Both the position numbers and the translations under genes were made by a program. Below the pieces are notes generated by a model. It searched no databases. It was given only the letters and a program-made list of their open reading frames with translations, and was not told the origin of the DNA. From Wallemia ichthyophaga EXF-994 (lineage: Eukaryota > Fungi > Basidiomycota), in NCBI RefSeq assembly GCF_000400465.1, contig NW_008806289.1, positions 180,001-212,000 of the forward strand: 32,000 bases of DNA, in the 5' to 3' direction. This document shows positions 12,244 to 17,601 of the stretch, one piece after another. Each line of letters begins with the position of its first letter. Position 1 is the stretch's first letter.

Positions 12244-13418
12244 TTAAGCTGCAGGCTTCTTTTTACTCCTACCCCACTTGACGCTTACAGGTTCGTTGCT
12301 AACGGTAAGGCCATTCTTTGAAATGGTTAGGGCTGCGGCTTCTGCTGCTTGCCTCGAAGTGAAATTGACAAAGCTGACTTTAGAGGTGGGGACTACGGTT
12401 GCTGACTTTATAGAATCAGCTGAGCCTCCAAATGCAGATCTCAGTTGATTTTCTGTAGTGCCTTCGGGTAGCTGAGAGCAGTACAGTGATAGCTGTGGTT
12501 GTTAGGTGAAATCCATCATAAAAGTAGACTGTAACGCACAATTTCAGGATCATCAGGCTTTTTTAAATCCAATTTAACATTCTTAATTGGGGGTGTAACC
12601 GGTGATGTAATTTGAGATAGTGATTGATTGTGATTTGAGGTAGAATTCTGATTCTTAGTTGGCTTGTAGTATGGTTCGTTCTTTGCAAGATCTTTAAGTA
12701 TTTTCTTTCCTGCGTTCTCTGCTCTCCCCAAGCCACCATCGACCATAGTAGAGTTGCCTTTGAGCTGAAAGGAGTGAGAAGGGATAGTCAAGTGGATATA
12801 AGACACACCTTATCCTCTTGATTCTGTGCAAAGTATTGTCTATTCAAATTATCAGTTGGAGCTTTTGATTGGATACCGAGTGCAGCATCACGGAGGTGAA
12901 CGGGTATTTTGTAAGTCTGAAAAGAGTAAGAGTGACTTGTAGCGGTTGATAGTGTAACTCACTAAATCTAGAATACAAGTTTGACAGCAGTGCTTCATCT
13001 TTGCGCATGTGTTACAGATTTCTGTCTTCTTGTATCTAGTACCAGCACCAGGGCACCAACTGAATAAAGTGAAAGGACGAACGCAGATTTTGCATTCTTT
13101 ACCGAAAGCTCTCTTTTGCATTCTAACGAAGCTAATTGAGTGGGTTAGAGGAGAGTATGTGTATGGTGAGTACTAACGGATTTGGGCCTAGACCTGAAAG
13201 GGGATTTTAAGCATAAAACAGTAAAACGATAAAGGAACTTACAATCATCGCAAAGGATTGGAAATTCTGACTAAGTGTTTCATTAGAAAGTGAGTTTAAG
13301 TTGAGAGCAGCGCACTTCTTCCCAACCAGATGCATTAACGTCTCTCTGTAGATGATAATGTTAGCATGAATAGAATATTTTTACACATGTTCCTTACTTT
13401 TGGACCATAGGAGGACAT
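12244..13418 (-). CDS. SLT11: Pre-mRNA splicing factor Slt11/Ecm2/RBM22
   Basis: Spliced N-terminus [48 protein letters not shown]..., then [29 protein letters not shown] and NRQYFAQN, with a C-terminal RRM ending VKWGRS. Seven short introns with canonical ends. Confidence 0.92.
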
Positions 13419-13895
13419 TATGAGTGTATATGATAGAGAAGTGTGTTTTATTCAAAGGGATATAAATTATTGTACATGAATATCGTTTTATTTACACTTC
13501 CTATAAGAATATCCGTTAGCAACTTCTAAACAACTTCAACCAATCGACTTTTCAGTTAATTCTCAATTTAGCCAAAGTTATCCGCATATGCTTTAGCGCT
13601 AGGCAGGGGATGAAACATATAAAATAGCTTATTTCATCCTTTAAAGTCTAAATTGGTTGTACACTCTCACTCACATTAGGTATCGTGAATACAAGGGTGA
13701 AATCCTACTCGATCTCATTTTTGAGTCCAAGAAAATTTTCATATTAAAATAAATAATAATCATCATCATATAAATTCGTTAGTTGATATTAAAATGCTTA
13801 GTGGTATAGTTATTCTTCGCGTAGACGTTTATAGTCAACGCTAAAGTTATCCAACGACGACAACTCCTTGTTTCTCTGCTTTAATTGCATGAGTC

Positions 13896-14174
13896 TCATC
13901 GAAGAATGTTGTCGTATGACTTGAAACATGATCTGAGCTGTTTTCTCCTATTAAAAAGACGAATGAAAGACTCACCCACTCCTGACGAAATGCCTTGCTT
14001 TATCGTAGCTATGAAATGCATACCAGCGTGCACCTGGATACTCCCTCACTTGGTAAAGTGCTTTCTCACTTTGAAATCATCTTAGTAGACTAGATATACC
14101 ATTCATATCACTCACAGTCCGGGATATATTCCATTTTGCCTGCCTTTGTGAACTGCGTAGAAAACTATTTCCAT
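13896..14174 (-). CDS. Stand-alone RNase H1 N-terminal hybrid-binding domain (Cauli_VI-type) microprotein, 51-80 aa depending on 3' splicing
   Basis: Exon 1 14174-14116, intron 14115-14069 (47 nt, GTGAGT...CTAAG...AAG), exon 2 14068-13976. Protein is MEIVFYAVHKGRQNGIYPGLEKALYQVREYPGARWYAFHSYDKARHFVRSG, an ungapped match to the FYAVxxGR..G(V/I)(Y/F)..W......V..(F/Y)PGA....F....A..F pattern. A second GTGAGT donor at 13975 gives stops at 13972 (unspliced), 13896 (43-nt intron) or 13847 (38-nt intron). Confidence 0.8.
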
Positions 14175-14307
14175 GAATACTGTTTTTGTCAAGTGACAGT
14201 TGCGGTTTAACGCCGCACCGCGTTTTTATCAACAGCAGCGTCATTTATGCACAATGACTGAATGTCCCCTTTCTGATATCTTATCTTTAAGTAGATCAAT
14301 GTTGATA

Positions 14308-14361
14308 TTCTTATTATTCTTATTATTCTTATCATTATTATCAATCTTATCATTCTTATTC
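14308..14361 (+). repeat. Imperfect 9-bp tandem repeat, 6 copies, consensus TTCTTATYA
   Basis: ttcttatta ttcttatta ttcttatca ttattatca atcttatca ttcttattc read directly, between the HBD gene and RFA2. Confidence 0.8.
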
Positions 14362-14496
14362 AACTTTCTATATGTCTTGATTTAGCTGCGAAATCAGATA
14401 AAACACAACTATACGTATACTTTTAATTACATTCTTCTAATTTTCTCATCAAATATCACCATTTAATATACATCTACACCTCCTTAACTCACAACC

Positions 14497-14502
14497 ACGC
14501 GT
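14497..14502. promoter_or_regulatory. Possible MCB (ACGCGT) G1/S element upstream of RFA2
   Basis: Exact ACGCGT 8 nt before the RFA2 ATG. RPA genes carry MCBs in yeasts, but this position may fall in the 5' UTR. Confidence 0.3.
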
Positions 14503-14510
14503 GTCCAGAT

Positions 14511-15617: not shown

Positions 15618-17601
15618 CTAATCATCTGAATTGCCTTCATCGACACCTTCGTCAACATTCAATAGTTCAAACGCTGACCTGACGTTTCTGTCAGCAGGTG
15701 CTTCTGACTCTTCTTGTGGCTCTTCAGCCGCACTTTCATCGCTTTCTACCTCGTCATCCTCTTCTTCGGATGTATCATTCTGTGTTTCCGCAACAGAGTT
15801 GTTGTCCACAATGTAAATACCATTAGAATTATCCATCAATTCAATACCATTAGGAAGATATGCCCATTTGAATTGACTGGTTGTTATTTGGCGCAATATA
15901 AAGTTGCTCGCTCGATTCACATCTGGTCGACCAGCTTTAGCGGTCATATATCCTGCTCTGATTGAGTAACGTTCTAGTATCTCAAGGGTTTTCGTATTGC
16001 TATCCTCTCGTCTTGAGGTTCTAACCATACCTTCACGCCAAGTACGTTTATCTTCCTTTTCATCCTTCTGTAACACACTTTCTGGTGCTAAAGGAAGTAT
16101 ATTTTCCAATGGCATGCGCTGCCCAATTTCATACACTATGCGGCTAGGTTGACGTTCTTGCGATATTGGTACCGTTGATCCCAACACCTGCGCCCAGCGC
16201 GGTGTCGTCGATGGCCAAATCAATCCGGGACAATCAGCAAGCCTGACTTTGTTGGCCAAATAGAGCGTTTGAAAGTGCTTGGTTTTACCAGGAGTAGAAC
16301 TGGCTCTCACTTTTGAGCTTCCGAATAAACCGTTAATCACACTGCTTTTACCAACATTAGGCTGTCCGAGCAAACCGATGGTGAGAACGTCATCTTCTGT
16401 ACGTTCATTATTGGCATTTTCATCACCGTGTTCCTGCTCCTGCTCTTCTTCTTGCTCCTCCTGATCATCTGGAGAACCAACCTCCTCAAAAGCAACGTCG
16501 AAACCCTTTCTTTTTGGACCACCTTTCTTGTTTTCGGCTTGAACTCTACCTAACTTTCTGGCTTTGCGCTTTGCAACCTTGCTTGATGAATTCAAGGTAT
16601 CGCCTTGGTCAATATCAGGGTTTGTCGAGGCGTTTGGTTGGTTTGGATGCGCAGTTGTATCTATACGGTCTCTTATCTCCTTTGCTACATCCTCAAAATC
16701 AACATCCGGTACATTCTCACATGCAGACTTGAGTGAAGCGTGTGCAGTCGAGATAGCAGTGAGCAATTCTACCATGCTCTCGGGTTTGATGAATGGCTTA
16801 CGCCTGCCTTTCCCTTGTTCGCCTAAGACAACCTGATATGTGCTCAGCTTGACTATCTGATCAGTAGAGCTGAGTTGAGATTTGAGCCACGCTTCCCAAC
16901 AAGCGGCAGTGTCATCAGGTACCAAATCTACCTTTGTGAAGACATAGATGACTCTTTTATTTTGCTTCTCGGTAAGAAGATCTAAGTGTTTCTTTAATGA
17001 GTTTGTAAAGTGTATTGTAGGCAGACGAATGTCGATCAAAATCAACAAAACTTGAGACATTTCACATGTTCTCCAGCTTTCGTGTGTTAGCGGTTGGTAT
17101 TACTTAAACTTTAAAGTATACTTACAACTGCCTCCAAACTTCTATATTGCGCTCATAGACACCAACGTCCTGCTTTTGCAGCTTATCTAAAGCCTCGTCA
17201 TTGAATTTCAACCATCTCTTAAACTGAATGACTTCGTTAGTCTCTAACTCCTTTTTCGACATGTTGTAATTCCACTTTGGTCTTCTGAAGCAGCTGAGCT
17301 GCTGGTCGTCTGGATCTTGGCTCCAGATTGCGGCGTGAGTCGGTATAGGTCTGTGCCAATACCAACTATCAATCACCTCATTCTGATCGACGTATTCCTG
17401 GTTGGATGATCCCTGCCAAGTAGATTCAAGCTTCTCTGCAGCTTTCTTCTTCTTTCCTAGCTTTGGATCCAGATAAGCAGATCTCGAGAACTTTGGCAAC
17501 TGTGACTTCTTGGATATTTCAACATCCTCGCCTCTGTTCTGTGCCCTTTGCAATTTAAGTTTCTCGCTTTTCGCCTTGGCAGATTGTGGTGTACGCCTCA
17601 T
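15618..17601 (-). CDS. Circularly permuted large GTPase, GNL1/HSR1-like
   Basis: RRPKWNYNMSKKELETNE and YERNIEVWRQ, one intron near 17124-17077, then G4 (TKVD), G1 (GQPNVGKSS), G2 (TPGKTKHFQT) and G3 (DCPG) in permuted order. Confidence 0.92.

Follow-up and report, generated by a model that had tools for sequence, protein, structure and literature searches.

Between the divergently oriented RPA2 gene and SLT11 of the salt-loving fungus Wallemia ichthyophaga EXF-994 lies a short stretch of minus-strand DNA that resembles the hybrid-binding domain (HBD) of RNase H1 and carries no catalytic part. Is it a gene, and if so, what could an HBD do on its own? The question arose from a first-pass annotation of 32,000 nucleotides of contig NW_008806289.1 (positions 180,001 to 212,000, hereafter the window, whose numbering is used throughout), which proposed a spliced microprotein with substituted hybrid contacts.

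Gene structure and annotation of the locus

A GT..AG intron of 47 nt (14115-14069) joins two HBD exons into a spliced gene that is absent from the open reading frame listing of the window, just as had been proposed, and that is also uncalled in both W. ichthyophaga annotations, including that of the EXF-994 reference. Exons 1 and 2 together encode MEIVFYAVHKGRQNGIYPGLEKALYQVREYPGARWYAFHSYDKARHFVRSG, followed by TGA, and this form of 51 residues had been taken for the whole product. Alignment of the W. mellicola locus revealed a second intron and a third exon in the window, adding a conserved tail of 23 residues, so that the two-exon model has to be replaced by a minus-strand gene of three exons encoding 74 aa (Table 1). 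The coordinates originally given already ended at the TAA stop (13847) of this longer form. Retention of intron 1 leads to a stop right after codon 20, and retention of intron 2 terminates the protein at 51 aa by a TGA (13974-13972) overlapping the second GTGAGT. The mean intron length in W. ichthyophaga is 61 bp (PMC3849046).

Table 1. Position of the three-exon gene and of neighbouring features within the window
Feature	Position	Strand	Description
Exon 1	14116..14174	-	59 nt; ATG 14174-14172; residues 1-19 and 2 nt of codon 20; beta1-beta2 of HBD
Intron 1	14069..14115	-	47 nt, GTGAGT...AAG, phase 2
Exon 2	13976..14068	-	93 nt; residues 20-50 and 2 nt of codon 51; alpha1, beta3, alpha2 of HBD
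Intron 2	13920..13975	-	56 nt, GTGAGT...CAAG
Exon 3	13847..13919	-	73 nt; residues 52-74, HTTTFFDETHAIKAEKQGVVVVG, then TAA 13849-13847
Intergenic region	14175..14510		336 nt, common to divergent RPA2/RFA2 (ATG 14511, +)
Promoter-proximal block	14189..14232	-	TTGATAAAA ... AACCGCAAC ... TCAnnTGA; 5' of ATG; kept in four species amid diverged intergenic DNA
GNL1	15618-17060		Neighbouring ORF; 100% identical to GNL1 of W. ichthyophaga EXF-994; GNL1 of the AT-rich relative 56% identical

No protein identical to the product was present in a collection of 5.8 billion clusters. Its closest database relative is WALSEDRAFT_60031 of W. mellicola CBS 633.66, a hypothetical protein of 75 aa with the UniRef name 'Ribonuclease H1 N-terminal domain...'. 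With 78% identity over 74 aa, the same exons, the same synteny and a gene span that implies two introns, it represents the direct ortholog. A gene wholly new to the databases is thus not what the window holds, since the W. mellicola counterpart had already been annotated.

In the EXF-994 annotation the RPA2 model opens with a mini-exon, ATGCTTAGTG, at 13794 on the plus strand, followed by an intron of ~700 nt that spans the microgene. In the other W. ichthyophaga assembly and in W. mellicola, RPA2 starts at the ATG equivalent to 14511, and the ~700-nt intron is probably an annotation artefact that hides the microgene. Other W. mellicola gene calls run into intron 1 (...PGLLVVIFFVEDRNADKAFTV...), resulting in mis-models of 86 aa and 44 aa, P0002 (E3Q04_03898) and P0153 (L004), respectively. 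Published Pfam counts for the W. ichthyophaga proteome include one PF01693, two PF00075 and one RNase HII protein (PMC3849046 Table S1). Because the microgene is called in neither W. ichthyophaga annotation, the listed PF01693 protein is taken to be a different one; we assume that it is the canonical RNH1, presumably encoded elsewhere in the genome.

The divergent pairing with RPA2 is kept in W. mellicola, in the Wallemia-like assemblies L009 and L011 and in a more distant AT-rich relative (L003), and the microgene is probably expressed from a promoter region that it would have in common with RPA2. The hexamer ACGCGT, similar to the MluI cell-cycle box, is located at 14497-14502, 9 nt 5' of the RPA2 ATG, and is also found in L009. 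A conserved cell-cycle box in the shared promoter was rejected, as W. mellicola and L011 carry CACGTG in place of the ACGCGT of the window and L009. The shared intergenic region also harbors six copies of a 9-nt tandem repeat, TATTCTTAT, at 14306-14360.

On the other side of the gene, between its stop and SLT11, a conserved element of ~100 nt was noticed on the minus strand (13547-13647), 200-300 nt downstream of the microgene. It contains a C-box-like GGAUGAA (UGAUGAA in L009) and a D box, CUGA, enclosed by a terminal stem that varies between species yet stays complementary (window, ACUUU/AAAGU; W. mellicola, AGCA/UGCU; L011, AAGCAAA/UUUGCUU). Splice-like sequences flank it, GTGAGT at ~13674 and CTAAC...TATAG at 13500-13515. 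Judged by these motifs, the element looks like an intron-hosted box C/D snoRNA that would belong either to the microgene's 3' UTR or to the SLT11 5' UTR; a search of Rfam gave no match.

Conservation and selection in the Wallemia lineage

The locus between RPA2 and SLT11 is kept in five taxa of the Wallemia lineage. In a second W. ichthyophaga assembly the gene is identical, as it is on scaffold KE007239.1 (193847-194174), and the same three-exon structure was found in L009 and L011. Exon 1 is kept in L009, L001 and L011. Intron 1 measures 44, 53 and 53 nt in the orthologs and has diverged in sequence apart from its GT..AG ends. Intron 2 occupies the same position in all six orthologous genes, with lengths of 50, 50, 50, 61 and 55 nt in the others and likewise diverged sequences. 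In the AT-rich, uncultured relative L002, whose locus has a GC content of ~25%, the gene is duplicated in tandem (727-1010 and 1731-2010), again with RPA2 on one side and SLT11 on the other. Both copies lack intron 1, and both have an intron after the HBD followed by a homologous tail exon. The position of the stop is the same in all orthologs, and the tail motif aromatic-aromatic-[DN]-E-x-x-A-[ILA]-[KR]-x-x-x-x-G is common to the window, W. mellicola, L009, L011 and both L002 copies.

Comparison of the window with W. mellicola gave a dN/dS of 0.13 for the whole gene and of 0.086 for the HBD. When the two L002 copies were compared with each other, dN/dS was 0.14 in the HBD and 0.69 in the tail, the latter based on few sites. 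The first-pass annotation had named a dN/dS near 1 as the mark of a decaying relic; the values of ~0.1 obtained here point to purifying selection instead. Taken together with the conserved exons between diverged introns and the maintenance of the locus in five taxa, this marks the gene as conserved and probably functional, not a decaying relic. We consider it almost certain that it is a real protein-coding gene.

Synonymous sites between the window and W. mellicola are near saturation outside one block. This block, made up of the 3' half of exon 2 and the first bases of intron 2 (13969-14049, minus strand), contains a stretch with 59/60 identical positions that is the best 60-mer in 12 kb of synteny with W. 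mellicola, the neighbouring genes being 64-83% identical. Synonymous change affects 1/12.7 sites in the block and 24/34 elsewhere in the gene (p = 1.6e-4 in a post-hoc test), and the deficit is only marginal when four species are included (p = 0.07). A hidden RNA element was considered as the cause of this identity and rejected, given the lack of an Rfam match, a fold z-score of -1.05 and the marginal synonymous deficit.

A profile search of 1.84 billion representatives yielded no other full-length member of the family; its other matches were ordinary HBDs, and unannotated spliced microgenes are invisible to such a search. By sequence comparison, the gene is best described as an old offshoot of the HBD family that appears specific to the Wallemia lineage and that purifying selection has kept at a fixed locus. 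In Pleurotus, PF01693 is found within helitrons (PMC4289320); capture by a mobile element was ruled out here, since the locus is syntenic in five taxa.

Domain identity and contact residues

The identification of the domain, which had been made by hand, was borne out by profile search. The 51-residue form matched Pfam PF01693 with 48.6 bits (E 1e-12, cut-off 21), the match covering positions 2-44 of the 44 in the profile, and the 74-aa form scored 48.1 bits. Ungapped matches to the PDB were obtained for the HBD of yeast RNH1 (1qhk, E 1.3e-6) and for the human HBD (3bsu, E 2.3e-5), and when all six frames of the 32-kb window were scanned with the HMM, HBD signal was confined to exons 1 and 2. 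These matches and their restriction to the two exons exclude a chance resemblance. AlphaFold2, supplied with a four-sequence alignment, predicted a beta-beta-alpha-beta-alpha order (E5-9, E15-17, H20-27, E34-38, H41-50) with pLDDT 80-87 over residues 1-50, and a helix at 59-67 in the tail with low confidence. In Foldseek this model matched the 3bsu chains best among PDB entries, with an rmsd of 0.9-1.6 Å and a target TM of 0.84-0.89; 1qhk came next. According to profile and model, the protein consists of a single RNase H1-type HBD (predicted residues 4-50) and a short conserved C-terminal tail.

A catalytic domain has no place in this gene. From the TAA stop at 13847 to the annotated SLT11 ATG at 13418 there are 428 nt, and neither RNase_H nor any other Pfam family was matched in the three minus-strand frames of 13419-13930, in agreement with the earlier statement that no space is left for such a domain. 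This also rules out an RNase H remnant 3' of the stop. PF00075, whose presence in the same product would identify an RNase H1 enzyme, is thus missing. The end of the tail, G-V-V-V-V, resembles by eye the strand before the Y/F-x-D-G-S catalytic motif of short-linker HBD-RNase H proteins. The idea that the tail represents the linker and first strand of a lost catalytic domain was discarded, because the hhalign profile-profile alignment stops at residue 56. The gene may have arisen by truncation.

The ungapped HMMER alignment to 3bsu reproduced the residue mapping of the first pass. The structural residues F28, Y29, G34, G38, Q49, V50, P54 and F61 are kept (Y29 corresponds to Y6). Of the hybrid contacts, all of them encoded by exon 2, W43 is replaced by L20, K59 by Y36 and K60 by A37, while R57 is retained as R34; F58 corresponds to W35, encoded by the same exon. 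The protein therefore lacks the canonical W43, K59, K60 triad. Y6 and W35, the counterparts of the aromatics Y29 and F58, do not vary among six orthologs, and in the human HBD structure Y29 and F58 are reportedly the other two aromatics in contact with the DNA strand. The HBD carries a net charge of +4 in four Wallemia species (pI ~9.6), compared to +4 to +6 in yeast and human.

The two distant copies in L002 depart further from the canonical domain. They have N or S at the W43 position, C at K59, I at K60 and Cys at R57, a CxC motif, A-C-W-C-I, standing in place of A-R-W-Y-A. Their HBDs are acidic or neutral (net -2 and 0), and they matched PF01693 with 22.2 and 28.8 bits, barely above the cut-off of 21, leaving the C-terminal third of the profile unmatched.

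How unusual these substitutions are was assessed in 360 HBD copies, taken from the 147 best relatives. W occupies the W43 position in 60% of them and L in 24 (6.7%). At K59, K or R is present in 82% and Y in 4/360 (1%), and at K60, K or R is present in 56% and A in 4%. The R57 position holds R or K in 41%, the R of the window included. Joint loss of W43, K59 and K60 was seen in 12/360 HBDs, distributed over 9 proteins, several of which have further HBD copies. The highest-scoring relatives (P0003-P0007) are 327-643 aa long and each contain 4-8 stretches that match the HBD, with acidic linkers between the repeats in the sequences inspected.

The description of W43/K59/K60 substitution as the hybrid-binding-dead mutant is supported by the literature. 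In the human enzyme, heteroduplex binding is abolished by W43A and falls about 10-fold with K59A/K60A (PMC6846478), R-loop foci are lost in W43A and KK59/60AA sensors (PMC10639055), and WKKD serves as a standard control (PMC8653787). R57 has indeed been cited as an RPA-binding mutant position: the text of PMC11323782 states that R57A disrupts the RPA-binding domain, while a figure legend of the same paper labels R57A the catalytic mutant.

Possible functions and comparison with known systems

Our favored reading, held with moderate confidence, is that of a non-catalytic, stand-alone, degenerate HBD which has lost or weakened the canonical hybrid grip and is kept for another binding role. The substitutions, read against the human mutants, suggest that the change of W43 to L (N or S in the distant copies) and of the K59/K60 phosphate clamp to Y/A (C/I in the distant copies) would have removed or strongly weakened the grip on the DNA strand. 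By this analogy, the loss of classical hybrid binding itself seems fairly probable. If the grip is lost or weakened, the protein would most likely act as a small binding module of altered specificity, directed to a protein partner or to a different nucleic-acid form and not as a classical hybrid reader.

Nucleic-acid binding may nevertheless persist, given the retained Y6 and W35, the basic HBD of the four Wallemia species and the occurrence of Leu at the W43 position in 6.7% of related domains. The protein could then be a working reader of RNA:DNA hybrids or dsRNA that makes use of Y6/W35, the RNA-contact loop and the basic surface, and would act in trans to bind or protect R-loops or dsRNA without cleaving them. 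The strong full-length Pfam match, the invariance of the Y29/F58 equivalents in all six orthologs, a pI of ~9.6 with a net charge of +4 that equals that of yeast HBD1, and the 24/360 related HBDs with L at W43 are in line with such an activity. However, in the human HBD the single change W43A is enough to abolish heteroduplex binding (PMC6846478), Y at K59 is found in just 4/360 related HBDs, and the distant orthologs are acidic or neutral and match PF01693 with 22-29 bits, its C-terminal third unmatched. We regard this reading, the main rival, as rather unlikely, at perhaps one chance in a few. The adaptor or decoy function envisaged in the first-pass annotation appears improbable. It would have the protein, co-expressed with RPA2, compete with RNase H1 or modulate it at RPA-coated R-loops through its R57-type contact. 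The part of the argument that stands is the retention of R34 in four Wallemia species, together with the citation of R57A as an RPA-binding mutant of RNase H1 (PMC11323782), the divergent pairing with RPA2 in all five taxa and ACGCGT 5' of RPA2 in the window and L009. What does not hold is its generality: the R57 position is Cys in both of the most distant orthologs, which weakens this reading in particular, and R/K is found there in only 41% of HBDs. Moreover, with about three-quarters of the genome coding (PMC3849046), the pairing may simply be synteny passed on by descent, and ACGCGT is replaced by CACGTG in W. mellicola. There is only a slim chance that the gene encodes a natural 'WKK-type' binding-deficient variant, specific to the Wallemia lineage and maintained by selection, which, co-regulated with RPA2 from a common bidirectional promoter, would tune the handling of R-loops or replication stress through competition for an HBD partner such as RPA and not for the hybrid.

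Two further explanations deny the peptide a binding function. It might be incidental, a uORF-like passenger on a mainly non-coding transcript that would serve the box C/D-like element or SLT11 as host or leader, as could be suspected from the conserved, intron-embedded element 200-300 nt downstream on the same strand. We hold this to be very improbable in view of a dN/dS of ~0.1 with synonymous sites close to saturation, a domain match preserved across taxa, a conserved stop position and, in L002, a tandem duplicate with its own ORF and intron. Least credible is the view that a duplicated RNH1 lost its catalytic exons by deletion and that the gene is its decaying relic. The degenerate contact residues and the G-V-V-V-V at the end of the tail, which recalls the strand before the Y/F-x-D-G-S motif, are compatible with it, but five taxa with seven gene copies all have open frames and intact splice sites, dN/dS lies at 0.09-0.14, the upstream motif is conserved, the profile-profile alignment stops short of the tail and no RNase_H remnant is present. 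Truncation may describe the origin of the gene and not its present state.

What is new here is modest: an uncalled gene, a 74-aa model with a conserved tail, confinement to the Wallemia lineage and a triad-less HBD under purifying selection. That HBD-only proteins are abundant is already known, as is the W. mellicola ortholog in the form of a hypothetical protein. The analysis supplies a gene that the W. ichthyophaga reference lacks and shows that a degenerate stand-alone HBD can stay under purifying selection across a fungal lineage. At present the product is one more uncharacterised PF01693-only protein. If a partner were identified, it would stand as a natural equivalent of the engineered W43A/K59A/K60A controls in R-loop studies and could reveal a hybrid-independent function of the HBD fold.

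Compared to the HBD of RNase H1 (human 3BSU, yeast 1QHK), the protein has the same fold and length, shares 36-45% identity and keeps the structural core and the F58 aromatic. It differs in lacking an attached catalytic domain, in the changes W43 to L, K59 to Y and K60 to A, in its family tail of 23 residues and in being encoded by a separate three-exon gene. The caulimovirus P6/TAV viroplasmin belongs to the same Pfam family and, according to the Pfam description (cf. PMC7102451), also has the domain without an RNase H catalytic domain; the viral HBD-like region, unlike the window protein, is part of a large multifunctional protein.

A parallel is offered by the uncharacterised PF01693-only proteins named 'RNase H1 N-terminal domain-containing' or 'viroplasmin family', WALSEDRAFT_60031 among them, several of which are 80-110 aa long. 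Among the 147 nearest relatives PF00075 was detected in 59 and RVT_3 in 31. As only 59 have PF00075, many appear to be without an RNase H domain, and an HBD on its own is no rarity. In contrast to the window protein, most small PF01693 relatives keep W43 and the basic K59, and the motif set LYQV..Y...W and the tail are confined to the Wallemia lineage among the relatives found. The combined loss of all three contacts is shared with the degenerate extra HBDs of multi-HBD proteins; in S. cerevisiae Rnh1, too, the second HBD is degenerate. These extra domains, however, adjoin intact copies, a catalytic domain or both in one chain, whereas the HBD of the window stands alone.
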